A stretch of 64,000 bases of DNA, taken from NCBI GenBank assembly GCA_020891255.1, contig BQFW01000001.1, positions 2,356,001-2,420,000 of the forward strand. The letters are read 5' to 3'. Below, piece after piece: positions 5,479 to 38,209 of the stretch. The notes beneath the pieces were generated by a model. That model was not told where the DNA came from. It was given only the letters and a program-made list of their open reading frames with translations, and did no database searches. The translations under genes and the position numbers were made by a program. This DNA comes from Entomortierella parvispora E1425 (taxonomy: Eukaryota > Fungi > Mortierellomycota). Numbering within the stretch: position 1 is the stretch's first letter; every line of letters starts with the position of its first letter.

Positions 5479-7810
5479 ATGCCGCCTGGACAGCACATTG
5501 TCAATGGCAAGAGATCCCCTCCTGGATCTACCATATTCCTGTTCCTCCTCCTGGGACTGGTCTCGCTCTGCAGTCTTCTTTCCATAGAGACCGTAGCTGC
5601 TGCACCTGCGGTGGCACAACTCCGTCCTTTAGAAGGCAAAAGACAAACGCCTTCGAAGGACCTGCATCGGGACCACTTGCTCCTGGCAGACAATGTCTTT
5701 TTGAACATTGAAGACATTCTCGACTCGCCAGAGATGGACCCATGCCAAATGTGCCTGAACGGAATGCAGGTTGCACAGACATTTTCCCGGGAAGCACCCG
5801 AGCTTGTTCCCGGTGTTCTTCGATCGCTTTGTCTTCAATATTCAATCATGAGGGCTGATTCTTGCTTGGGACTAATGGAAAGACTTGGTCCTGAGCTCGC
5901 CAGTATCTTTTCAGAAATGAATCTCGAAGGTTCAGACGGTTATTACGCCTGTGCGTACTCGTTTCCTGGATCTTGCCCTGTCCCTGTTCATGAACCTAAA
6001 CCAATTACCTTCCCCAAACCCAAGCCTGCCGACGCAAAGCAGCCTGCTCCCAGTGGCGAGGTCATTCAAGTTCTACACTTCAGCGATTGGCATCTTGACC
6101 CGTTGTACATGCCTGGTGCGGAGGCCAACTGTTCGCACTCGATGTGCTGTAGAGATTACGGACGATGGAATGACCCTGGGCCGATCAAGAAGCCCGCGTC
6201 CAAGTGGGGCGAAGCCAAGTGCGATGTTCCTATTACACTTGGTCTTAGTGCCATGGAGGCCATTACTCGCTTTGTGCCCAATGCAAGCTTTGGTTTGTTC
6301 ACGGGCGATATCGTCTCGCACGACACCTGGTTGATTACGGAAAAGTATGTGTCTGACGAAGAGACCAGGAGCTATAACATCTTCAAGAAGTATCTTCAAG
6401 ATCTCAAGCTCTATGTTGCTCTGGGAAACCACGACTCTTATCCTGCAGATCAAACCCCTGGGCGAGCCCGACCAGCGATGTATGAGACGCAACAATGGTG
6501 CGTATATCTGATTGATCCATTGACTGTTCAATTGACTCGGCTTGTGAGTGACCCTGTACTGACTCCTCTCCTCTCGACCTGTCTTGCCAACAGGCTTTAT
6601 GACCATGTGGCCAAAATTTGGGAAGAGAACGGATGGATTTCATCTGTTGAAGCCGAACACGCGCGTTCTCATAACGCCATGTTCATGACAAGACCTATGG
6701 ATGGTCTCAAGCTGATCACCTTGAACACCGATCTTTATTATGTGCGCAACTACTTTACTATGCTTGATACAGAGAAGGATGATCCTAGTGGAATGTTTCA
6801 TGATTTAATTCTGGAGTTGCAGGATAGTGAAGACCGCCAAGAAAGAGGTAAGCGCCTCTCAAGCCAGTGACGACAATGCACCATGTACTCCAAAATCTGC
6901 CTTTATAGACTCACACGCTCCCCTCAACGACTAGTGTGGATCATAGGGCACATGGCCCCTGTAACTTTATCATTATCTCGATCTTCTATTCTATTCGAGA
7001 GGATCGTTGCAAGATATTCTCCACATGTTATTGCTGGTATCTTCACAGGTCACTTTCACCTCGACAAGTTTGTGGTTGTTCATGACCCTGATGCTCCGGA
7101 GCAATCTCATGACAGTGCCATCAACGTTGTGTACGAGGGGCCGAGTATCACTCCCCTTGATAATGGCAATCCTGTAAGTTTTCAGATGGCTATCTATGGC
7201 CCGACAATAAACCGTTTGTCGGCACTAACACGCGTTGCATTTTTCTTGCCGTCCAATTTTTTTCTAGGCCATTCGATGGTATGACATAGACGCAAAAACA
7301 TTCTCAGTCGTGGACACGCACACAGTCGTAGCAGACATTATAAGTCAAGCCACTTACTGGGAGGAGCACGATCTCGAGCCTGTATGGAAGCTTGAGTACT
7401 CTGCAAAGTCCTTCTATGGCGATCCAGATGCCCCTTTGGGGCCGCATGACCCCCTGTCCCCTTCATTCTGGTACGACGCTGTGGAGAGAATGAAGGCGGA
7501 TCCCGACCTGTTCAACACGTATTGGTCATACTCGTTCAAATCATCCGCTAGGGCTAGCCCATGCCCGGAGGGTTCTGCGTGTGAGCAGCAGTCCCTCTGT
7601 CAGATGCAGGCTATTACGGTGGTCCAGTCTGATACTTGTACGGCAGAGAGTAAAGAGCAGCACCCAACGAAGAAGGACAAGCCAGAGAAGTTTGCGACAA
7701 CGCGATCAGGTCGAAAGGTCCAGGTGGATGAATACCGAGAACAGCGAGGCATCGAGGAAAATCTTCGCCGTCAACAGGCAGCTTTACACGCACGCAAATA
7801 CGATTTGTAA
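5479..7810 (+). CDS. Acid sphingomyelinase-like metallophosphoesterase with saposin-B domain
   Basis: Signal-anchor hydrophobic stretch, saposin-type Cys pattern (CQMC...C...C), and metallophosphatase motifs LHFSDWHLD, FTGDIVSHD, LGNHD, IIGHM, FTGHFH; introns near 6498-6593, 6848, 7174. Confidence 0.9.
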
Positions 7811-10904: not shown

Positions 10905-13900
10905 ATGGTCCACGCCCCATCCCATGACCCCCTCTCGCCCCGATTGCTCGACCAGGACAATGTTGATTCTATAAACCCAGCTGCTTCTTCTGCAGGGAGT
11001 GCCTTGTCTCGGAACCGTGCCTCCTCCACCGCGACTGTCGCCACCCTGACCTTTGAGCCCGCACCACAACCCTCATCTCCGACTTTGCCCTCTCTTGAAC
11101 ACCACCAGCGATTCAGCTACCCTCGAACAGTCGACTCGAACCGTGCTCATCCCTCAAAGTCCTTCTCATTCAACTCGATTTCAACGCGTGATGACGATGA
11201 GGAAGAGGACGAAGAAGACGAGGAAGAAGACGACGAGGACGTTGGAGACGAGTCCCAACCTATTTTGACCGCAGCAGCACCTGGACGGGCCAAACTTGGC
11301 AAGAAGCCTACATTTCTCGGTGAGTTTGCTTATTGATAACCACGGGGTGGAATGGAGTTGAATGGAGGTCTTTCCAACCGCATCTGACGGTGCACCATGA
11401 AGGTTTGGTTGGTTTGGTTTGGTTTGGTTTGGTTGGTCGGTTAGCTGAGTTGTTCCAGCCCCCCTGATCAGCCAGTTTGCCCAAGGCTGGACGCAGCCCT
11501 GGGTAAAAACCCAGAAAAAACCCCCCTACCAGAGCCCAGGGCATAGGAATCACACACTGACTTTTTTTTTTTTTTTTTTTTTTTGGCTCTGGTCATACAG
11601 GAAGGTCGACGTACGAGAATAGCCGCAGCATACAACATGTGCACCTGGAAGAGGAGGATGTTGAGCTGACCCTAAGCGGATACTGCTTTGTCCAATCACG
11701 TATCTACATGTACTATCTGGCCTGTTTGCTCAGTGGAGGGATCGTCTTTTTGTTGGCGCGCTGGATGCCTCAACGGTACATCATGTTCGTGGCACGATCC
11801 TGCGACATGGGCGATGCTGAGGCGGTGGTAGTCGAGGTAAGCATATGGGACGGGACGGGAAGGAAAATAGGAGGACTCCTTGAGGCGTGTGAACCACGAG
11901 AGTCGATCGATATTCTGGTACTCAGGTGTTTGGGGCTCTGGACGAAGGATGCTCGGCTAATATGATAATCATATATTTGTCTCCTCTGCGTAGAATGGAT
12001 ATGGACAACTGGAAACCCACACCGTGTTCACAAAGTACTATGGAGGGCCCATTGACTCGGTCTTCAGTCGTGCTCAACTGAGCCAGGATCATGGATATGG
12101 CGAATTGCAAGATGTAGATGCCATGGTAAACTGTTGCTTGCAAAAATCATCTGTAGTAGCAATGGTCCAAGACAATACCTAAACGCATTTACCTTTACTT
12201 ACGTCCTAACTTCTTTTTTACATTTTATAGTCGTCGGGCATGCTGCATGATATGCGCTATATTGACTATCAGTACATTCGCTTCATTTTCAACCCAGTCA
12301 CCCAAACATTTATGCAAAACTCATCATGGAAGGACCCGGAATGGTCAACAGTCGCCAATTGTGAGCGGGGACTGGGAAGAGAGAGTCATCAGGAGCGCAC
12401 CATGGTCTTTGGTCAGAATGTGATCGATGTGCAGGAAAAGACTGCTGGGCAATTGTTGGTTCAGGAGGTGCTGCATCCATTCTATATCTTCCAGGTCTTT
12501 TCAATGGCTCTTTGGTTCGCCGACGATTACTACTACTATGCAGCGTGCATCTTTGTCATCTCCACAGTCTCTGTTTTTACCGAGCTAATTGAGACCAAGA
12601 AGACCATGAGGCGAATGAGGAACATGTCAAAGTTTACCTGCAACACAAGAGTTTTCCGCTCTGGGCTTTGTACGTATCTTCAACAAGACATCGTGGCATG
12701 AGATTATTATTTCCTAATTCTAACTAATTGCTTCCTTCCTCTGTTCATGATGTTTATAGGGCGCATCATTGGCTCGGAGGAATTGGTGCCTGGAGATGTT
12801 TTTGAGATCACAGACTCCGGACTCGCTGTATTTCCGTGCGATGCTGTCCTGTTGACAGGAGACTGCATTGTAAACGAGAGCATGCTGACCGGGGAATCTA
12901 TTCCTGTCTCCAAGGTCCCCGTGACAGACAAGGTCCTGCAACTCTTGGATCTCTCCCTCGCCAATATACCCGCAGATCTCGCTCGTCATTTCCTTTTCTC
13001 TGGCACAAAAATCGTCCGAGCGCGACCTGGAACAGCCAACTCAAAGAGACGCCTCAGCGCCGAAGATTCTGAATATGGAATGAGGCAACCCATGCGTGGA
13101 CTTGCCATGGTAGTAAGGACAGGATTCAACACCACCAAAGGCAACCTAGTTCGTTCCATGCTTTTCCCGAAACCAAATGACTTTCAGTTCTATCGGGATT
13201 CTTTCCGGTTCATTGGAATCTTGGCCTGCATTGCTTTCTGCGGTTTCTTGGTCTCCACTGTCAACTTTATCAGGATCGGCGTGCCCTTCCGTCTCATGTT
13301 TATCAAAGCATTGGATCTGATCACCATTGTCGTACCACCAGCGCTGCCTGCCACCATGTCCATTGGAACCAGCTTTGCTATTGCACGTCTCAAGCGAAAC
13401 AGCATCTTTTGCATTAGTCCGACTAGAGTCAACATTGGAGGAAAGATCAACTGCATGTGCTTTGACAAGACAGGAACCCTTACAGAGGAAGGTCTTGATG
13501 TGCTCGGAGTACAGTGTGGAGACAGCGAGAATGGAAACTTCGGACCTTTAATTCAGAAAATCGAGGAAGTACAGTCTGCGCCAGAGTCGATGATTGAAAA
13601 GAGCACCTCTCTTGTTCATGCAATGACTACCTGTCATTCTGTAAAATCTTTGAACGGCGAGCTCATTGGCGATCCATTGGACCTTAAAATGCTTGAGTTC
13701 ACGCGTTGGATCCTGGAGGAGGGTGGGCTCGGAGCGAGAACCTCCAGTGTTTCGGAAACGGCCCACAATCGAGCTCAAGGAAATGGAGGTGGCATTGTAT
13801 CAACAGTTGTTCGACCCCCAGGTACAAAGCAGTTCAATTTAGACGACGTGCTTTCACATCATCCTTCGGAAATGATTGGATCGGTAAGCGAGCAAACAAG

Positions 13901-16143
13901 TCCTTGCTTTCATGTTTCTCTTTACTATTATATTCTAACGAGCTCTTCTGTGTTTGCCAACTTGTAGGACTCACACTTGGAACTTGGAATTATCCGCTGC
14001 TTTGAATTTATATCGTCGTTGAGGCGAATGAGCGTCATTGTCAAGAAGCTGCACAGCCCTGGGATGGACATCTACGTGAAAGGAGCACCGGAGGCCATGA
14101 CCGATATCTGCCTGAAAGATTCTCTCCCTAATGATTACAAGGAGCGCCTGTCCTACTACACTCACCACGGATTCCGTGTCATCGCTTGTGCCACCAAGTC
14201 AATGCCTAATCTGAACTTTGTGCGTGCTCAGCGAGTGAAACGTGAACAAGTCGAGTCGGAACTGACCTTCCTTGGATTCATCGTCTTTGAGAACAAGCTA
14301 AAGCCCACAACCGCGCCAGTCATCACCACCCTCAGCAACGCACAAATTCGTCAAGTCATGTGTACTGGCGATAATGTTCTCACTGCCATTAGTGTGTCCA
14401 GGGAGTGCGGTCTGATCGGCAGAACAAAGGATGTGTACGCACCAAGATTTGTCTCTGGTAATTCTACGACCGAGTTCTCAAAGATTATCTGGGAAAACGT
14501 GGAAGATAACCGCAAGATCTTGGATTCTGTCTCGCTAAAGGTAACTTGGTACCACTGGTATCGCGAAATACAGGGTTGAATGTTCTGATTCTAACATTAC
14601 ATTCTCTTTTAGCCAACCACAAACAGTGGAGACATTTCCCGCAACGGTCGCGAATTCCCAGTGTATACCCATTTGATGAACGACTATGTCCTTGCCGTGA
14701 CCGGCGATTGCTTCCGATGGATGGTCGACTACGCACCGACATCGACACTCAACAGGATGCTTGTAAAGGGTCAGATATTTGCAAGAATGTCTCCGGATGA
14801 AAAGCACGAGCTTGTCGAAAACTTGCAAGGAATCGGCTACTGCGTGGGCTTTTGCGGAGATGGCGCCAATGATTGCGGAGCCCTCAAAGCTGCAGATGTG
14901 GGTATTAGTTTGAGTGAGGCAGAGGCATCCGTTGCGGCACCGTTCACGAGCAGATCGAATGATATTGAGTGTGTTGTCAAAGTTATTCAGTAAGTTGACT
15001 ATTGCTGTGATGGGACCATGTTTCTTCTTTTCATGTTCTAGGGACTGAGCTCTTTGTTCTCAATTTTAGGGAGGGACGTGCCGCCTTGGTGACAAGCTTC
15101 AGCTGCTTCAAATACATGGCGCTGTATAGTATCATCCAGTTCACCACAGTGAGCTTCCTTTATACATTCGCATCCAACCTGGGAGACTTCCAGTTCCTGT
15201 ATATCGATCTTGTGCTCATCTTGCCCATTGCCGTACTCATGGGTCGCACCGAAGCCTTCCCAGTCCTGAGTCCAAAACGCCCAACTGCGAATCTGGTCTC
15301 AAAGAAGGTCCTTACCTCTTTGATCGGCCAAATTCTGATCCAGGGCTTCTTCCAGGCGTCCCTATTCTTCATTGTTCGTGCACAACCCTGGTACAAGCCT
15401 CCAAAATACGAGCGAGGAGAGAAGAACATTGAGGGACTGGAGAATACAAGCATGTTTTTCCTCTCGATCTTCCAGTACCTGCTGGTTTCGGTTGTGTTCA
15501 GCGTGGGCCCTCCTTATAGAAAGCCCATGTCCACTAACAGTAAGTTTTGATAGTGCAGGAGGACCTACTTCCATGCAAGATCGTAGGATCCTTACCTTTT
15601 TTTTTTCTTTCTCCTGTATCAATAGGGCCCTTCGTATTTGTGACCTTTGGGCTGGCGATGTTGTCTGCCTCTATTGTCTTGATTCCCAGCGCTGGAATTT
15701 CAAGCTTCTTGCAACTGCTCGCCCTCCCGTTGAGCTTCCGTGTGTTCATTCTCTTCTTGGCAGGGGTGCATCTTTTCTGTGCTTTTACCGCTGAGCATGT
15801 GTTTTTTCCAATCATTGCTTCTTGGATTGGAAAGTTGATTCAGAGCCGCAAGAGATTGTCGACCGTTCAGGCACCACAGCAACAGAGCCAGTGGCAACCT
15901 CTACCCCAGTCGCAGACTCCTGCACATCAAACTTATCGGATAGATGATGATGCAGACGACGATAATGAGGACAATTACGATCGGGGCAGCGGATCAAGGC
16001 CAAGTACTCCACTGATGCACTCGACTGAGGATTCACATAGCAAGGTGTACCCATCTGAACAGCACATCAGACCTGGGACCAAGATTTATAAGATGGTGGA
16101 AGAGGAGATGAACAAGCATAGACACCAACAAGTCATTCAATAG
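10905..16143 (+). CDS. YPK9: P5B-type ATPase (Ypk9/ATP13A2-5 family, polyamine/cation transporter)
   Basis: [13 protein letters not shown] (P5B-specific), phosphorylation motif [32 protein letters not shown]; about 9 exons. Confidence 0.95.
11402..11437. repeat. (GGTTT)n pentanucleotide microsatellite in ATPase intron 1
   Basis: ggtttggttggtttggtttggtttggtttggttgg read directly. Confidence 0.85.
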
Positions 16144-16373
16144 AATAGAAAAAAAAATAGCGTTTGCTGCATCTCATTCACATGCACTTTTCTCCCCTCG
16201 ACAGATATGTCTCCTCTTTGAATTTATATGCAAATACGAAGAAGTCCTCCGGTGTGTGTGTTTATTTTGATGAATATCTCCAACGGAAGATGGTAGGGGG
16301 AAGGGAGTATATAGCTTTTTGGAGTGACAGGCTAGACTCCCTCATGCAAATAAGAAAAAAGGGAGGACTTCTC

Positions 16374-18096
16374 TCACTTTTCCCGAGAAGAGTTAACAGA
16401 GTTGATCTTTGTCAAGGCCGAGCTCGATGCCGAGGCGGGGTAAGCATTGGCACTAGGGGTATTACCCCTCACAGAGCGTGAGTATTGCAATTGAACCGAT
16501 CTTCTTCCGGGATGATCCTGGGGAGAAGGAGAGGCCATGAGGGCATGGATCTGATCCAAGGAAAGAGCTGAAAGCTCTCTGGCCGAAAGGTCGGACTGGG
16601 CCAAAGGATAGTTGTCTTCAGAAAAGATCCAGTCAGATGGAACGGGGGCACGGGTGGCAACCATGGAGGCGACCTCGGCCTGAATGACCTTACAAAAGTC
16701 GTCCAGGGGCAAGTCATTGTAATCATCGTTGAAAGGGTTCTCAATCTCGTACGCGGCCGAGAGGATACCCAATAGCGTAAAAGCCGTCAACATGGTAGCA
16801 ATAACAACGAGAGGGCCCATGGTAGCGACCAACTGGAAAGGCAAGGCAAAAATATAGATCCAGGTGGCGTGATGCAAATGAATCGAGTAAGCCAAAGGAA
16901 TAGGAGTTCTCAAGATTCGCTCAAAGCCTGTGAGACAGTCCAACATGGAGACCAAGTTGTTGTTCATCAGCGTCAATGTGGAGGCATCGACCTTGCCCTT
17001 GGCACCGCAGCTCTTGATGTAGCTTCCGATATAGTACGACAGCTCGACGGGGATGTTGGTAGGCGTCAGGTAATCAAAGGCCAAAGCATGCTCCACCTTG
17101 GATTGACGACGAGCGCGTCCACCCTCACCATAGGTGGTTCCGGGTGCTCCTGTGGAGGAAGAGGCTTGTTGTTGCTGTTGTTGAGGGAACTGAGCCGAGG
17201 TGGGCGACAGGGCATCGAGACTGACGGGAGGGATGTCCATGCGCCAGTCCATGGGCTGGACCGAAGTAGGGAGCGAGTACTTGGGGAGGTGGGTGAGGAG
17301 ATCGACCATGTCATCGTAATCATAGCCGTACTCTTCACGCAGGTAATGTTTGGTGCTGTATGCAAACGCGATCAAGAGGTTGATGGCCGACTTTTTCTCC
17401 AAAAGATCACGCGTCTCGGTTTCGCCCACGCAGACCCAGATCGCGCGCGTCATGTTGCGGATGCAGAGAGTCATCTGGGACCACAAACGACGTCCTTCCC
17501 AATAGCGATCATAGGCTAGTAGTTTGTTTGCAAGGGAGGACCAAATTAACAAACAAAAGGAAAGGCATGCAGATTACCGAGTATTAGTTCAATGGTCAAG
17601 GCGTAAATAAGCATGTGCGCATGCATGGCGGCAACGGCAAAAGGGCATGGTCACACAAAAAAAAAAAAAAAAAAAGATTGAGCTTTCTTGGCGTACCTGT
17701 ATTTGTGCGGAAAACAAGAAGCAATGACACAACCATGCCCATGACAGTGACCAGGTTCTATGAAAAAAAATGAAGAGAATGAAAACGTGAGCAGAAAAGT
17801 CAGGAAAACGCTGTGAGGTCAAACAGAGCGAGGCGCGGTCATCAGTCCCCAAATCACTGGGATTTTTTTGTCCACAAGCGAAATCAAGGACGAGAAAGAA
17901 GGAAGGCAGAAGAAGTATTTACCAGTGTATAGCCCATCTTCCAGCCTGAATACTCGCTGATGCAAAACACTGCACCAGAGTAGACACCCGTAAGGAGAAC
18001 CTGCCACCAGATCTGAGGGATCACAGTGCCCTTGAGTCGCATCATGAGAGGCCAACGCCGACTCACATGGACCGTGGTACCATACTTGCGCACCAT
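16374..18096 (-). CDS. Bestrophin-family (UPF0187/YneE/VCCN-like) anion channel
   Basis: LLVFRTN, AYDRYWEGRRLW, FERILRTPIPLAYSIHL, EIENPF motifs; ATG at 18096 (MVRKYG...). Confidence 0.9.
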
Positions 18097-19519
18097 TTTG
18101 TGGGTATTGGGGTATGTGGTGGGTGGTGAGGCAGTGGGAAAGAGTGTCGATTCAGAAAAAAAAAGGCGAATGGACAAAGAGGAATGAGGTTCAAGAATGA
18201 GACGAATGAGAGAGTACACGCCGTTCCGTTGATGTCGATAAAAAAAGCAAAGGGGAGGAGAGAGTGGCGGAGATAGAGTGATCGAGGAAATGAAATTGAG
18301 CCGCAGGCGGTGGCAAGAGGACACTCAGGGAAATGTGGGTGAAGAGATTGGATATGAATAAAGGGATGGAGTTGCCGCGCGAAGGGGTTGGGAGGAGAGC
18401 GAAGGTGAGTGCCAGCGCGGGAACAGAGTGAAGAAAAGAGAAAGGAAAAGTGAAGAAGAATAAGGCTAATGAACAGGGTCCGGGGGGTTCCAATCCAGGC
18501 ACCGTCTGACAAAGAACTCTTTTTGATTGCAATTGGAAGCGGAGGGTGGGCCTTTTATCGTCTGTTACCAATGAGAGATATATGGGGCACCCACCGACTG
18601 AACTGATAAGTAACGTATTGTAACCATATTGGAGCACTCTTCACTCACACGACCAACGCCGCACCGTCCCTTCGTCCGCGCTCCAGCTCGATCAGCGCCG
18701 ACTGTGGGCTGAAGCCAATCTATTCTGTCGCTGTCTCTGCTGCTGCTGGATTTAAGACCACATCCGAGGAGGAAGGAACGGCATGCCAGTGGCAAGTGAG
18801 CAAACAAGCTCTCTCTTTTTCTCTCCTGACGCTGTTGACAAAGAGCCCCTGTCCAACTGGACCCTCTGCTGTGCTTGAAAAGGAATGAAATTGATCTGAA
18901 AACCAATGGCATGACTTTCTATTTATTGTCTCGGTGGCAAAAAAAATTACTTTAAATATCTCGGGCAAAGGGGGGCAAATGTACCCTGGCTACCGCTCCC
19001 CCCTGTGGAGCGCTAGCGCGCAGTACGTGTACGTGTCTAGGTTGCTCTAGAGCTGGAGTCATCCGTAGCCTTCATCGTTGCCTATCTCGTCGATAAGACA
19101 GCTGCCGAACACAACAAAAGCAAATGGGAAGAGTTGCCATCAATATTGCCATCGTAACGGATGTTTTATTCATTTAGCGCCTTGGACGATGCTGAAAGAC
19201 AGTCTAGGGTTGGACAACGAGCCCTTGGAGCATTGGAACGGTGCAAAGCTCCGAAGAAGGAGAAATATGTTCCTGTCTCACAGCTGCATATCCTATCCTG
19301 GATCCCAGTAATGGAAGGAATTCGCTTCGGCGGCGCAGCTGCCGCCCCATCGCTGCGGTCGTTGGAGGTGCTGCAGCTGAAGTTGCCAGCCATGGGCCCT
19401 GTCGTGGTTGTCGTACCTCTGACGGTAGAGCAGAAAGTCAGCCTCCTCGCGATCTATGAGATACCGGGGGTATGTTACAGCCGACTCCAATGAGGTATAT
19501 ACAGTGCTTGGGACAACTG

Positions 19520-31674: not shown

Positions 31675-34615
31675 ATGTCGAACGACTTTGTTATGACCAT
31701 TGACGACGACGACGAGTCGGTCCCTTTCCTTGATGAGGAGGAAATCGAGGTCGAGGAGGTCGCCACCAAGAAAAAGAACAAAAAGAACAAGAAGGGACAC
31801 CAGATGACCAAGGACGCTGGCGACCTTGACCCCAACTTTTCTTTTGATGCCGAAGGAGGCGGACACATGGGAGCCCATCATGACTGGGACTTTACCGCTG
31901 CCCGTGCTGCTCTCCGTGCTCAGGACGAGGTAGGAACCGAGGATCAAGATCAACAGTTGAAGCGACGGATCAGTTACCAAAGTACTGACTGAATTTTATA
32001 TACGCTACAGATGCAACCTGGTTTGAGCTTGGATGATATCATTGCCCGGAAACGTGCTCAGGTTAAGGCAAAGAAGTCAGGCAAGCTCATCGCCCCTATC
32101 GAGGATGAGAAAGAAGTCAACGAGGATGATGAAAGTGGTAAGTGGCGTGAATCTACTGGTCTGTATTCTTAATAGTAACGTCTTTGTTTAAAATCCCATG
32201 CTGATCCTGTTTATGCTTCATGTATTAGAATTTCAAGAGGCACCCGATTCAGATGAGGAGGGCGCTGAGATGGAGGGTATTCAGTTCGACGAAGACGACG
32301 AGGATATCGGTATGTTCATCCTTCCGTGTTCTGGTTAATATCTGCAATGGCGTTTTATTATCTTCAAGCTAATGGCAATGTACTTTTTCTTCAATAGCTG
32401 CTGATGGCTTTGGCGGTGGTCGTGACGAGGATGCTGGATTGGAAGACAACGAAGCCGAGGAGGCTGAGCTTGAGGATGCCAGCGAAGAAGAATCTGGAAG
32501 CGAAGAGTCAGAAGGAGAGTCCGAGTCTGAAAACGAGGATGAAGAAGAGGAGAGCGAGAGTGATAGCGATGAAGAAGAAGAGGAGACAGAGTTCCAGAAG
32601 GAGGTGAGGATCTTACCATGAGGCACTTTCGTGGACACCAGTCAAGTTTTGCGTTCTGACATGTTTTTGTTTTTGTTTTTTTTTTTTTGCAAAAATAGCG
32701 CAAAAGAGCATACTTCGCTCCCGAAACTGATACGCCAACCGAGGTTGCTGAGACTTTTGCTACCATGAACCTCTCCCGTCCCATCTTGAAGGGTCTTGCC
32801 CAAGTCGGATTCATTCAGCCTACCCAAATTCAGGCAAGAACTATTCCAGTGGCATTGATGGGCAAGGATATTTGTGGTGGTGCTGTTACTGGTTCAGGAA
32901 AGACTGCTGCCTTTGTTGTGCCCGTCTTGGAGCGTCTTTTGTACCGATCCAGACAAACTGCTACTTCCCGAGTCTTGATCTTGTGTCCTACTCGTGAATT
33001 GGCCATTCAGTGTCACAGTGTTGCCCAAAAGCTGGCCAGTTTTACAGATATCACCTTTGGTCTCTGTGTTGGTAAGTTCATTGACAGAATGAAGTCCCTG
33101 GATAGTTATTAGAATTGTGTTCTGACCCTTTGTTGGTAATGTTTGATAGGTGGTTTGTCCCGTAACGCGCAGGAGATTCAGCTTCGCACCCGCCCCGATG
33201 TTTTGATCGCCACCCCTGGTCGTTTGATCGATCATATTCTCAACTCTCGCTCATTCACATTGGATCACATCGATATTTTGATTATGGATGAGGCTGATCG
33301 TATGCTCGAGGATGGTTTCTCGGCCGAGTTGACCGAGATTGTGAAGGCCTGCCCCCAGAACCGCCAGACTATGTTGTTCTCTGCTACCATGACCGACAAC
33401 GTTGACGAGTTGATCCGCATGTCCTTGAACAGACCTGTTCGTCTTCAGATCGATTCTTCGAATGCCACCGCCGCTCGTTTGGTTCAGGAGTTTGTTCGTA
33501 TCCGTCAACATCGCGAGGAGGACCGCCCTGCTGTTCTCTTGGCTCTGTGCTCTCGCACCTTTAAGCGTCGCGTTATTATCTTCTTCAGATCCAAGGCTGC
33601 AGCTCATCAAATGAAGATCATTTTCGGTCTCATGGGTCTTCGCTCAGCAGAGCTTCACGGAAACTTGACACAAGAGCAGCGTCTTGCCTCTCTGGAGGAA
33701 TTCAGGGATGAGCGTGTCGACTTTTTGTTGGCCACTGATCTTGCCTCCCGTGGTTTGGATATCAAGGGTATCGATACCGTCATCAACTTCAACATGCCTC
33801 AGAATTACGCCATTTACCAGCATCGTGTCGGTCGTACTGCTCGTGCTGGTCGCATGGGTCGTGCCGTCACATTGGCCGGAGAGAACGACCGCAAGCTTTT
33901 GAAGCTTGCCATCAAGAACGCAGACAAGAGAACTGTCAAGCATCGCGTTATCCCTCAGGATGTTATTACCCGTTACCGCGAGCGCGTTGAGGGATTAACT
34001 GACGGTGTCAAGGAGGTCATGGCTGAAGAGAAGGAGGACAAGGCTCTCCGCCAAGCAGAGATGGAAATGAGAAAGAGTCAGAACTTGTTGAGGCACGAGG
34101 ACGAGATTTACAGTCGACCTGCCAAGACGTGGTTCCAGACTGCTGACGAGAAGAAGTTGGCTGCCGACACGAGTAAGAATGCGTTGAACGAGCCCAAGAA
34201 GCGCAAGGTTGTTGAGGCCGACGCACCCAAGCGCGATCGGTTCGCAGGTATGTCTCGTGCCAAGAAGAGACGTCTCCAATTGTCTGAGGAGGATCACCAG
34301 GATATCAGCTCGCACAGCAAGTCTATTCACTCTGCCAAGAAGGCCCTCAAGCCTACCAGGATCCCCAAGCTTGCACCCGAGAGAGTCGCAACGAAACCTC
34401 AGGACAAGAAGAAGAAGAAGAAGAAGGATGTCGACTTTTCAAGAGACTTGGCCGATGCCTCCAAGAATGGAGTTGCAGCAGCCAAGAAGTTGGGCTCTGG
34501 ATCCAAGTTTGGAGGCAAGGATAAGAAGGACGAGAAGAAGGAGCGCAGCGGCAAGTTGGGCAAGCTCCGTTCCAACAAGGCCTTCAAGAGTTCCAAGAAG
34601 TACAAGAGACGTTAA
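31675..34615 (+). CDS. DRS1: DEAD-box RNA helicase Drs1/DDX27 (60S biogenesis)
   Basis: [33 protein letters not shown]; C-terminal [10 protein letters not shown] and [12 protein letters not shown] characteristic of Drs1. Confidence 0.95.
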
Positions 34616-34771
34616 ATGTCAGATCACTGCCATTTGCATCCCAGCAGATTTATCCCCCCAACCACCCGGTCACCCATCATTCCCGCATCCACCCTTTGCA
34701 TGTCATAATAAATACAAGAACATAGAACAAAACCCTTCAAAGCTCCTTCAATTGAATTTGGTACATCTGTC

Positions 34772-35015
34772 ATGGATGCCTGTCACGATACAGCGCCGTT
34801 ATACCTGGAAACCAGGGTCAAGTATTTGTTCAGCGCGCACGTAACCAGTAACCTTAGTAGCTGTAAACGGAACAGGTTCGATGTAGCAAGGACAATTAGT
34901 CTTCTCGTGGTCCCACACAAGGGTGACCCAGAGGCGGTCAAGCAAGCATATGCTGAGCGATATGGGAAGAACGGGAGCAATCAAGGATTTCATGGGGAAG
35001 GATCTCATTAAATAG
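34772..35015 (+). pseudogene. Possible annexin-repeat relic (frameshifted fragment)
   Basis: TISLLVVPHKGDPEAVKQAYAERYGK, then GAIKDF in another frame, resembles an annexin repeat C-terminal helix; judged by eye only. Confidence 0.25.
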
Positions 35016-35229
35016 TGACAGGGTCGCTGACACCCACCCACGATGGCGTATCGGGACGGCACAGACAGGTTGTGCAATTGCAAAAGCATTTTATTCCCTT
35101 GGGTGAAGCAGGTGCATGATACTTACAATTGGCAGGAAATAAACCACACGCCTGCCAGGGACCAGAAAAAAAGAATGCGGTGACACACCAGGACATCAGG
35201 ACAAATTAATAAAAGAAAAAAAAAAGAAA

Positions 35230-35315
35230 GGATGTGGAGGGTGTCGAACCCATCAAGCAAGCCCAATGAGGACCCGTATTGTTCCAAAGAAAATAGTTGA
35301 AGTTGCTACACATCC
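35230..35315 (-). ncRNA. Putative Pol III small RNA, copy A (86 nt)
   Basis: GGATGTG...CACATCC terminal stem, TAGC after the stem, B-box GGTTCGACACC, followed by TTTC-T10. Confidence 0.5.
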
Positions 35316-35667
35316 GTGAAGGTTTTTTTGAACCTCACTTGATAAACCGTTCTTTGGAGGCGTAGTCGCCTTTTTTTTTTTGGTGGCGTAAAATTTCATG
35401 GCAGCCTAGAAACCCTTGACCTCATGTCTTCACATAGACCAAGCAGCTCTCTTGTGGGTGCAGGGTTTGTTGCCTGTTGATCGTAAGTACAAACCACTCT
35501 TTCACTCTCTTTCTCCACCCAAGGGAAGCTAATTAATGCAGACAAAGCGAATCCATCGCCAGATTCAGGAAAGGGATTCAGAAATTTCACGCCACCAAAA
35601 AAAAAAAAAAAGGCGACTACGCCTCCAAAAGAACGGTTTATCAAGTGAGGTTCAAAAAAACCTTCAC

Positions 35668-35753
35668 GGATGTGTAGCAACTTCAACTATTTTCTTTGGA
35701 ACAATATGGGTCCTCATTGGGCTTGCTTGATAGGTTCGACACCCTCCACATCC
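35668..35753 (+). ncRNA. Putative Pol III small RNA, copy B (86 nt)
   Basis: GGATGTG-TAGCAACTTCAA...GGTTCGACACC-CTC-CACATCC followed by TTTC-T15. Confidence 0.5.
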
Positions 35754-35863
35754 TTTCTTTTTTTTTTTTTTTGGGCAAATGACAAAACAATTGACTTCGC
35801 CTCCAGAAATCTGTCTGCGGCTGGAGTAGCATTCAAGGGCCTTTCTGTAAAAAAACACCTGGT

Positions 35864-35959
35864 GGATGCGTAGCAGCTTCAAATCACTCCAAATACTGAG
35901 GCACTAAGTGTCGCATGGCATTGAACCAACAGCTGAGGGTTCGGACCCTGGTCGCATCC
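35864..35959 (+). ncRNA. Putative Pol III small RNA, diverged copy C (96 nt)
   Basis: GGATGCG-TAGCAGCTTCAA...AGGGTTCGGACCCT-GGT-CGCATCC followed by TTTTC-T11; compensatory T-A to C-G change in the terminal stem relative to A and B. Confidence 0.5.
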
Positions 35960-36070
35960 TTTTCTTTTTTTTTTTGTTGTCTCGTTGTTGTCTCGCCGGT
36001 TTTCATTCAAAACCTCTTGTATGTCACAAACTACCTGTGCTCCAGGTCTGCCCTCCCATGTTCCTGTTGC

Positions 36071-36083
36071 TCCCTCTCCCTCT

Positions 36084-36138
<55 letters not shown>
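36071..36138. repeat. (CT)n microsatellite
   Basis: Perfect CT run at about 36094-36138, preceded by CCCTCT variants. Confidence 0.95.
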
Positions 36139-36141
<3 letters not shown>

Positions 36142-36374
36142 AACTCCTCGATAGTCATCAGCTCTGGTGCCTCCTTCTGTAATGTCGAACTCTTGAGAGT
36201 GTCGACCACCAGATTCTAATAAGTATGCGAAATAGTCACGTGTGGAAGGTTTGACATAACTGATGCGGTACTCCAGGATTTTTTGAGCGACCCTCCTAGT
36301 TGCGAGCTTTTTCGTCTTTTTTTTTTCTTTCTTCACCCTACACCCACAACACCCATCCATTGCTCTCCATTCTC

Positions 36375-38209
36375 ATGAGCGACCAGGGTACTCACACTCT
36401 CCCAAACGAGGTCCTTTTGGACATTCTTCTTCACCTTGCGCAACTCTCTCCTCTCTCAGTTCCAAGACTTGCCCAAGTATGTCAACTCTGGCGATCGATT
36501 CTTCAGACGTATGAAGGCTTACTTTGGAAAGTGGCCACGCTGTGCAGGTTCCCAACTATATGCCTGAATCGATCCTGGGACAGAATCCCTCTCAAGAATG
36601 AGGATGCTATTTGTTTCAACCGACAGAGTGCGGAGTCAGAAGCGATGAAGGGCCAAAGCTGGAAGAACATCTTTCGTTTGCATCACGCCTGGGCACATCA
36701 ATCTGGTCAGACCCTGGTGATATCCCCTCCTTCGACAGAGGATCATGGTCTCACTGCATCCCAGGGCTCCATACCTCTAGACCACCACCAACATTCTGTC
36801 CACCATCATGACCACCACATGCAGGGTCTTCTTTCGGCTCGACCTTCTGATACGGGACCTGAGAGCACTCTGTACCCACCTGCGCTTAGCCCGTCGCCAA
36901 TCACTGATCACAGTATACTTTCAGCGAAAAACAACCTGCAGGAACATAAAGGGGTGAATGACAATCGAGCTGCAAACAGGAGCGACTCGCTGAGCTGTAG
37001 CTCTTGCACCTATGCTGATGTATGTTTGATCCCCCGGGCTGGGATCTGCGTGAGAACGCAGAGAGATCGCTCTCGTCCGCTGATGCAAGTTGTCAACGCC
37101 GAGGCTCTGGACCAAGTTGTTGACCTAGATGACCCTGTGGGTGCCCATCAAGACTTGATCTCCGGTCTGGCGGCCAACGATGAAGGATCGTTGCTAGTGT
37201 CTTGCTCGATCGATAGTACCGTTCGTGTTTGGGAGATTCAAAAGCATTTTACCCTGGAGGACCGATCGAGGAAATCATTCAGAGACCTTTTTCAGAGGTA
37301 TGGATGTCCGATCCAAAACCGAAAGGTATTGATTGGCCACATCGGATGGGTTAATGGTAACGTAAAAAATCAGCGGATCAATGCATGTTTCTTCACACTG
37401 GTTATTGGCATGGTCTAATTGTTCATCACCCTTCCATAGCTGTCGCGATCGAGAAGACAACGGTTGTCAGTGGTGGATCTGATCACACTGTGCGAGTTTG
37501 GGATGCTTTGTCGGGACTTCAAATAAGAGTGATTCCCGACCTCTTTGTCTCGCGAGATCTCGATCTTGGCGTATACTCGGTCGCGATTCATGGGTCCACG
37601 ATCGGCTGCGGCTCTATCATTGAGGGCTACCAAATTCATGATCTCGACTCTGGAGAGCTTCTGTTCGAGATTGACGAGCAGCTTTCGTCCAAGGATCACT
37701 TTCGATTCGAAACTCAACACTATCAGCAGTATGCTGCTCGAATCGCTTTCACAGACACCGTCGTGGTCACGAATTCAAAGTTGGAGGGCGTTCTGTGTGT
37801 CTGGGACCGTCAAAATGGTCATCCCTTATACCGGATTCAGGTTTGTTCACCAAGACCCAGTCCTCCAGAAACGAATAACGCGCCGGACACAAGTCGAGGG
37901 CTTGAGCGCATGAAGGTCCTGGACCCATATGGCAGCAATGGACACTGGGATTCGGACAGATCTACTGTTCACACGTTCAAGATCAACAAGTCAGGCTCGA
38001 TGCTGATGTGCACCTTGTGCGATGGACGCGTTTCACTATTTGAGTTTGGTAGTATGGCCCACGGAGACGCTACTGATCTCTGGAGCATTCAATCGCAAAG
38101 GCCTGTAAGGGCTGGCCAGACTCAGGATCAGCATCCACATCGGTGTGATGGTCAGACAGCCTGGATATGGGTTCGGAGCCATACCGGAAATACAGTTGTC
38201 GCCATTTGA
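36375..38209 (+). CDS. F-box / WD40-repeat protein
   Basis: F-box LPNEVLLDILLHL...LAQVCQLWR; WD repeats LVSCSIDSTVRVWE, LIGHIGWVNAVAI, VSGGSDHTVRVWD; one intron at about 37357-37439. Confidence 0.85.

Follow-up and report, generated by a model that had tools for sequence, protein, structure and literature searches.

Candidate small RNA genes with tRNA-like ends, clustered at a conserved locus in Entomortierella parvispora and related Mortierellaceae

We describe three related units, A, B, and C, in a 64,000-nucleotide stretch of contig BQFW01000001.1 of the fungus Entomortierella parvispora E1425 (positions 2,356,001 to 2,420,000; referred to below as the window), which resemble genes for small RNAs transcribed by RNA polymerase III (Pol III). 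The units sit between a gene for a DRS1/DDX27 helicase upstream, whose open reading frame shows 100% identity to the deposited E. parvispora DRS1/DDX27 protein, and a gene for an F-box/WD40 protein downstream. Unit A occupies positions 35230..35315 on the minus strand (read 35315->35230), unit B positions 35668..35753, and unit C positions 35864..35959, the latter two on the plus strand; the predicted RNAs are 86, 86, and 96 nt long, respectively. The units represent a real feature, well above chance, which is conserved across at least two genera.

Units and motifs in the window

All three units start with GGATG(T/C)GTAGCA(A/G)CTTCAA and end with the complement of their own first seven bases, with a GGTTCG motif shortly before the 3' end and a long T run immediately after it. 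The T runs were read directly: TTTCT10CTTTT on the minus strand after unit A (35211..35229), resembling a Pol III terminator, TTTCT15 on the plus strand after unit B (35754..35772), and TTTTCT11 on the plus strand after unit C (35960..35975). The 19-nt 5' motif GGATGYGTAGCARCTTCAA occurs three times in the window compared to 0.03 expected occurrences, and none of 100 shuffled sequences reaches three. The upstream element GACTWCGCCTCCA has exactly three mismatch-free occurrences in the window, one ahead of each unit. A preliminary description of this DNA, made from the letters alone, had reported three units with these motifs, and direct reading located all of them where that description had placed them, including the 7-bp terminal pairing, the T-A to C-G replacement at pair 6, the B-box-like GGTTCG, the long T runs, and the upstream element shared by the three units.

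Two points of the preliminary description had to be revised. All three units are real, but A and B are not independent: they lie in the arms of a single inverted duplication (left arm 35211..35397, containing unit A with its promoter and terminator; right arm 35581..35772, carrying unit B) that are 98% complementary. The number of independent paralogues in the window is therefore two instead of three, with C as the diverged one. Within the RNA, A and B differ at two positions, and at both of them B's version weakens a predicted pair. The central parts of B and C had also been called unrelated, but when they are aligned together with their flanks they prove to be diverged and partly alignable, with residual homology (CATTG, TGA.GG) plus indels.

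Between unit C and the F-box gene lies a CT-rich tract (36056-36140) of CCCTCT units grading into ~30 CT dinucleotides, at which short-read contigs break.

Relatives, copy number, and conservation against surrounding DNA

Relatives were sought by synteny, i.e., by the combination of the DRS1 helicase gene, one or more units, and the F-box/WD40 gene. The contig L040 (a Logan contig from Mortierellaceae, F-box protein 66–68% identical) carries the 3' end of the helicase gene, one unit, and the F-box gene. Its 112-nt unit (2528->2417) lies ~340 bp downstream of the helicase 3' end on the same strand, is orthologous to unit C, and has an upstream element identical to that of C over 20 nt. In Gryganskiella cystojenkinii, three intact units and one truncated unit lie around the F-box/WD40 gene on contig L039, with the helicase gene on the same contig. 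The intact units are Gc1 (6658-6747, plus strand), Gc3 (12607->12519, minus strand), and Gc4 (11620->11530, minus strand); Gc2 (6915-6984, plus strand) retains the upstream element and the 5' half, after which it is truncated by a deletion. The total comes to seven intact copies and one truncated copy at the syntenic locus of three genomes. The same architecture and the same upstream element recur in both relatives, which supports the proposal of the preliminary description that the units form a novel, structurally constrained small-RNA family with Pol III hallmarks.

A covariance model (R1) built from the seven intact copies detects exactly these seven at 53–84 bits (A 84.1, B 81.9, and C 65 bits), Gc2 at 23 bits, and nothing else in 208 kb; a search of the window with the filters off yielded no unit beyond A, B, and C. 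Scanning metagenome contigs with the two-gap pattern GTAGCANCTTCAA..GGTTCG..TTTT returned 35 loci, all of them chance matches with no terminal pairing or long T run.

Some details of the locus concern its history. The deletion in Gc2 joins the unit to sequence resembling DNA ~150 nt downstream of Gc3, a sign that inverted duplication of entire segments took place around the F-box/WD40 gene. In L039, the interval 14241-19460 between the RNA cluster and the helicase gene contains a Tc5-type transposase gene and an unannotated gene of 611 amino acids. In E. parvispora and L040, by contrast, the helicase gene and the units are adjacent; the surroundings of the helicase gene are rearranged in every genus examined. 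At the 3' end of this gene, an assembly labelled E. chlamydospora (L001) shares 75% of nucleotides with E. parvispora, compared to 86% for Podila and 81% for Gryganskiella, so that genus labels are a poor guide to relatedness here.

The units keep their place between the same two genes in three genomes, and the B-box is well kept in most copies. Both observations would also suit a conserved feature acting at the DNA level, such as a TFIIIC-bound boundary (similar to extra-TFIIIC, ETC, sites) that separates the helicase gene from the F-box gene, with any RNA being incidental. However, complementarity between the first and last seven nucleotides, hairpins that change in a pair-preserving way, and oligo-T tails are features of a transcript and not of a protein-binding DNA site, and the orientation of the genes around the units is not conserved between genomes. 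We regard a role as DNA as highly improbable.

The degree of conservation was compared with that of the surrounding DNA by global alignments between species and between paralogues, scored as z against shuffled sequences. Similarity within the RNA gives z of 3.4–10.8 between species and 10–15 between Gryganskiella paralogues. The first 90 nt upstream are conserved at z 3.4–14 for C, L040, and Gc3, and at z 6–13 between Gryganskiella paralogues, whereas no similarity is found between A/B and L040 or Gc3 in this segment (z 0.8–1.8) because the A/B element lies ~20–30 bp closer to the start. Further out, the flanks at -91..-290 and +25..+224 are at chance level (z -1.6 to 2.4), also between Gryganskiella paralogues. 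Conservation is confined to the RNA and the proximal promoter. Since the flanks cannot be aligned even between paralogues of one genome, the copies are old, and each of them has been maintained.

Copy number was assessed by comparing three DNA sequencing runs with window positions 34600-36600 (2,001 letters). In the best run, the read depth is ~62 over unit C and ~110–119 over the A/B arms, compared to ~59–69 over the spacer that separates the arms and over single-copy DNA nearby. These depths fit one copy of C and two copies of A/B, and a dispersed high-copy repeat can be dismissed; the covariance model detects three copies in the 64 kb. The units thus do not show the high copy number that the preliminary description had tied to a tRNA or SINE assignment.

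One of the runs (X3), from another sample and study under the same organism label, represents a second strain. At position 6 of its unit C there is a T whose partner is still G, which replaces the C-G pair by U.G. The promoter and the first 18 nt of its unit B are identical to the window at 80 of 81 positions. Past those 18 nt, the next 122 nt of the contig cannot be aligned at 80% to the 97 nt of window 35686-35782, which could be a replaced body, an indel, or a failure of the alignment beside the T run. An idea that the RNA 3' end might serve a primer-binding site elsewhere was dropped; no complement of the 3' end was found elsewhere in the window.

These data bear on a further explanation, namely that the units are decaying tRNA pseudogenes or relics of tRNA-derived short interspersed elements (SINEs), functionless and alike through recent duplication. 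The T-loop, T-stem, and 7-nt acceptor-strand spacing of A and B are indeed tRNA-like, local duplications are evident (the A/B inverted repeat and the truncated Gc2), unit C of the second strain diverges at the rate of its flanks, and B carries two changes that weaken pairs relative to A. In contrast, neither ARAGORN nor the Rfam tRNA model at E<=10 calls a tRNA here, the RNA and promoter are kept while adjacent DNA has become unalignable even between paralogues of one genome, and changes in the predicted stems mostly preserve pairing. The upstream element is conserved although it would lie outside the transcript, and a retroposed SINE would not carry such an element; a tRNA-derived SINE would also be expected to have an A-rich or repeat tail instead of the oligo-T tail seen here. 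An origin as SINEs or tRNA pseudogenes is unlikely in view of the small number of copies, the conservation of a promoter that is not itself transcribed, and the maintenance of paralogues and orthologues in DNA that is otherwise unalignable.

Predicted RNA architecture and promoter

All intact copies can be drawn on a common plan. The ends form a 7-bp terminal stem, GGAUGYG / YRCAUCY, and the 5' end reads GGAUGYGU(N)AGCARC, of which U(N)AGCARC is conserved and predicted to be single-stranded. A variable, mostly pyrimidine-rich stretch follows, and then a middle hairpin of copy-specific sequence: AUUGGGC/GCUUGAU in A/B, AUCGGC/GCCGAU in Gc3, and UUGAAUCGA/UCGAAUCAA in Gc4. Near the 3' end, a T-like hairpin with a UUCRA loop abuts the 3' strand of the terminal stem or sits 2–3 nt away from it. 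This hairpin is GAGAGG-UUCRAA-CCUCUY in Gryganskiella, with a 6-bp stem and a 6-nt loop and abutting the 3' strand; AGGG-UUCGGA-CCCU in C; GAGGG...CCUUC with an enlarged loop in L040; and GGG-UUCGACA-CCC in A, with exact tRNA spacing. The predicted fold of unit A contains both the terminal 7-bp stem and the T-like hairpin, the latter as GGGU/ACCC.

In the terminal stem, 98–100% of alignment cells are paired, and pair 6 is U-A in A/B, C-G in C, U.G in the second strain and three Gryganskiella copies, and U.U in L040. For an alignment of five sequences folded with RNAalifold, 89.5% of cells are paired compared to 32–54% when the partners are slid; four pairs have changed on both sides, and the covariation score is reached by 18 of 500 shuffles. 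Individual Gryganskiella copies fold with z of -2.4, -1.7, and -3.4, while A (-1.35), C, and L040 are at about -1.1 to -1.35 and B is at 0.06.

The upstream alignment shows a core, T(T/A)CGCCTCCA, that is invariant across the copies. The core is positioned at -53 in A/B, -71 in C, -73 in L040, and -80 to -85 in Gryganskiella. In the window, the element is GACTACGCCTCCA in both A (35355..35367, minus strand) and B (35615..35627, plus strand); that of B starts at -53, and that of A starts at -52, one base nearer owing to a 1-nt indel between the arms. The element of C, GACTTCGCCTCCA (35793..35805, plus strand), starts at -71. An AT-rich block is found at about -31 to -39 in all copies. The AT-rich proximal region of B (35637..35660, plus strand) contains TTTATCAAG at -31..-23, possibly a TATA-like box, and an A7 run at -14..-8; the corresponding region of C (35831..35855, plus strand) contains ATTCAAGGG at -33..-25 (ATTCAAAGG in L040) and an A7 run at -15..-9. 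The preliminary description had noted such a run just ahead of +1, and both runs were read there. In every copy, position -1 is a pyrimidine and position +1 is G. Inside the units, the match of box B to GGTTCGANNCC is 11/11 in A/B and 10/11 in C and the Gryganskiella copies, and T runs follow every copy in the window, L040, and Gryganskiella.

Some Pol III genes, including those for tRNA-Sec, vault RNA, 7SL, and yeast U6, have mixed promoters that combine upstream and internal signals. The oligo-T tails, the B-box, the pyrimidine/G start, the upstream element, and the AT-rich block at about -30 would fit genes of this type.

A related explanation starts from the external promoters of small nuclear RNA (snRNA) type, which are known from U6, 7SK, Y RNA, and tRNA-Sec genes. 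The units could be snRNA-type genes in which an upstream element similar to the proximal sequence element (PSE), recognised by a SNAPc-like factor, and a TATA-like box drive expression of a lineage-specific ribonucleoprotein RNA, with the B-box-like sequence having a structural role only. The upstream core is the most invariant feature of all, surpassing the B-box, of which both L040 (GGTTCTATCTC) and the second strain have a degenerate version; the AT-rich block near -30 and the near-identity (80/81) of the B promoter in the second strain point the same way. On the other side, the spacing of the element varies both relative to +1 (-53 to -85) and relative to the AT-rich block (22 to 49 nt), unlike that in known PSE/TATA promoters, and the element was not seen before any known snRNA gene, the DNA examined containing none. 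A purely external promoter of this type is doubtful as an account of its own, but it stays live as a variant of the mixed-promoter interpretation.

A putative tRNA-like RNA family

We searched for known RNA families at two levels of stringency. At the Rfam gathering score, the window gives no hit to any family, and no vault RNA, tRNA, or Y RNA turns up in the 144 kb that make up 11 related loci. At E<=10, in stretches of 0.9–1.3 kb from two species, only chance-level hits appear: window positions 35150-36050 have no match to vault RNA (RF00006), tRNA, tRNA-Sec, Y RNA, or 7SK, and L039 11450-12750 has chance-level matches to small nucleolar RNAs (snoRNAs) and other small RNAs only, with no vault RNA, tRNA, or Y RNA. 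Among these, a weak box C/D-like match to snoU25 between Gc4 and Gc3 (11862-11913, minus strand; 17.7 bits, E 1.5) is probably due to chance. ARAGORN detects no tRNA genes in the window, L039, or L040.

The preliminary description had compared the units mainly with vault RNAs. Vault RNA genes have an internal box A and box B, paired ends, a variable centre, and clustered paralogues (PMC11012908). The units share the size class (~90–110 nt), the clustering of paralogues, the paired ends, the B-box near the 3' end, the paralogue-specific centre, the oligo-T terminator, and probable help from an upstream promoter. If they were fungal vault RNAs, they would provide the RNA part of a particle built from the major vault protein (MVP), and box A and box B would direct their transcription by Pol III. 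The missing match to RF00006 does not by itself exclude this, because non-vertebrate vault RNAs are too diverged for sequence models. Nevertheless, there is no match in two species even at E<=10, a canonical box A is absent, and the fungal host belongs to a group in which vaults and MVP are reported to have been lost (PMC3762200, PMC12547018). The resemblance of the 5' end to the UAGC..ACUUC motif of vault RNAs does not hold either, the Gryganskiella copies being without CUUCAA, and the units further differ in that their 3' hairpin abuts the terminal stem as the T-arm of a tRNA does. We consider the assignment to vault RNAs very unlikely.

The alternative offered in the preliminary description, an association with Ro60, fares no better. 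Y RNAs share with the units Pol III transcription (as predicted here), a length of ~100 nt, paired ends, an oligo-U tail, small paralogue clusters, and an external promoter, but the units have no Rfam Y_RNA match, and their terminal stem is a plain 7-bp helix in which no Ro60-type bulged lower stem is seen. No fungal Y RNA has been identified (PMC7281143).

The units also resemble tRNA genes, particularly those of the tRNA-Sec type with an upstream promoter and an internal B-box. The likeness comprises the 7-bp acceptor-like stem, the adjacent T-loop-like hairpin with UUCRA, tRNA spacing in A/B, the B-box, and the oligo-T end; in addition, transcription probably starts with the first base of the stem, and the RNA is nearly as long as tRNA-Sec. 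The units differ by the absence of a D arm and of an anticodon arm conserved between copies, and their body varies between paralogues. Of the tRNA-derived origin suggested earlier, the geometry of the 3' end alone keeps the idea plausible. ARAGORN and Rfam call no tRNA, and the sequence CTCATTG, which had been read as an anticodon loop in B, is not conserved in other copies.

Several narrower resemblances were considered and rejected. A D-like stem (CAA/UUG or CAG/CUG) is altered in the second strain at positions 12-13 without compensation. The idea that CUUCAA represents the UCA anticodon loop of tRNA-Sec was set aside: the motif, located 14 nt from the 5' end, is not flanked by a stem, and Gryganskiella lacks it. 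Two CUGA motifs in C and in L040 raised the thought of a box C/D RNA, but A/B and the Gryganskiella copies have none. The ends GGAUGUG/CACAUCC are reminiscent of 7SK; with no Rfam 7SK hit and an RNA of one third of its size, this is taken as coincidence.

Partial mimicry of tRNA without a decoding function is known from mascRNA/menRNA and BC1-type RNAs, where it recruits tRNA-processing enzymes. In contrast to those RNAs, which are excised from long Pol II transcripts or go back to retroposed SINEs, the units are low-copy and syntenic and have a conserved promoter and terminator of their own.

Our interpretation is that the units are lineage-specific (Mortierellaceae) genes for small structured RNAs of 86–112 nt that are tRNA-like and most likely transcribed by Pol III; we put the probability of this reading at about 60%. 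It is credible that they constitute a new family among the Pol III tRNA-like small RNAs, not recognisable as vault RNA or tRNA. Since at least two related fungi retain such units at this locus, the RNAs are probably functional. We infer Pol III transcription, the RNA ends, handling by the tRNA pathway, and a function from the sequence data.

A number of observations weigh against this interpretation. The structural evidence is consistent and suggestive but statistically weak with seven sequences: in a MAFFT alignment of all seven, which places the hairpin of C and L040 out of register, covariation does not exceed that of shuffles, and the fold z-scores of B and C are unimpressive. In the promoter, box A is poor, with only TAGC of TRGCNNAGTGG matched, and the upstream element sits anywhere between -53 and -85 relative to +1, unlike the strict spacing of a PSE. 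The second strain has 7 substitutions in the 96 nt of unit C, with flanks similarly diverged, including one change at an otherwise invariant A of the AGCA motif and another that breaks a pair of the T-hairpin stem. Finally, no unit was found in the helicase neighbourhoods of Podila verticillata, Mortierella alpina, E. chlamydospora, and three Logan contigs, or in the F-box neighbourhoods of Gamsiella, Mortierella sp. AD011, a JGI contig, and E. beljakovae; in these relatives the search covered only the stretches around the helicase and F-box homologues, not whole genomes.

If the units are indeed tRNA-like Pol III genes, their expression could proceed as follows. A mixed promoter would consist of T(T/A)CGCCTCCA located 50–85 bp before the start, the AT-rich block near -30, the pyrimidine/G start, and the internal B-box, and transcription would end at the oligo-T tract. 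The pairing of the first and last 7 nt, together with the adjoining T-loop-like hairpin, would form a tRNA-like acceptor/T-arm "top half". Where a tRNA has its D and anticodon arms, these RNAs would have single-stranded U(N)AGCARC, a pyrimidine-rich stretch of variable sequence, and one or two variable hairpins. The oligo-U end and the tRNA-like minihelix may bring the RNA to La and to the tRNA-handling machinery for stability and transport, while the paralogue-specific body may bind a specific protein or RNA.

A more speculative extension, which we think unlikely, is that the RNAs act as tRNA-scaffolded adapters. The constant top half and U(N)AGCARC would be the docking site for a common protein or for the tRNA transport machinery, and the pyrimidine-rich single-stranded bodies would pick different RNA or protein targets. 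Such RNAs would be a fungal counterpart of vault and Y RNAs in logic, of independent origin, and might use an external promoter, possibly of SNAPc type, retained in early-diverging fungi.

To our knowledge, few fungal Pol III transcripts have been described beyond tRNA, 5S, U6, RNase P/MRP, and signal recognition particle (SRP) RNAs, and almost nothing has been described for Mortierellaceae. A conserved, clustered family of RNAs with tRNA-like ends and its own upstream element would extend the fungal non-coding RNAs by a new class and would give a handle on the types of Pol III promoters in early-diverging fungi. The family would further provide a naturally occurring case in which the top half of tRNA is reused as a scaffold, in a cultivable soil fungus where it could be easily tested.

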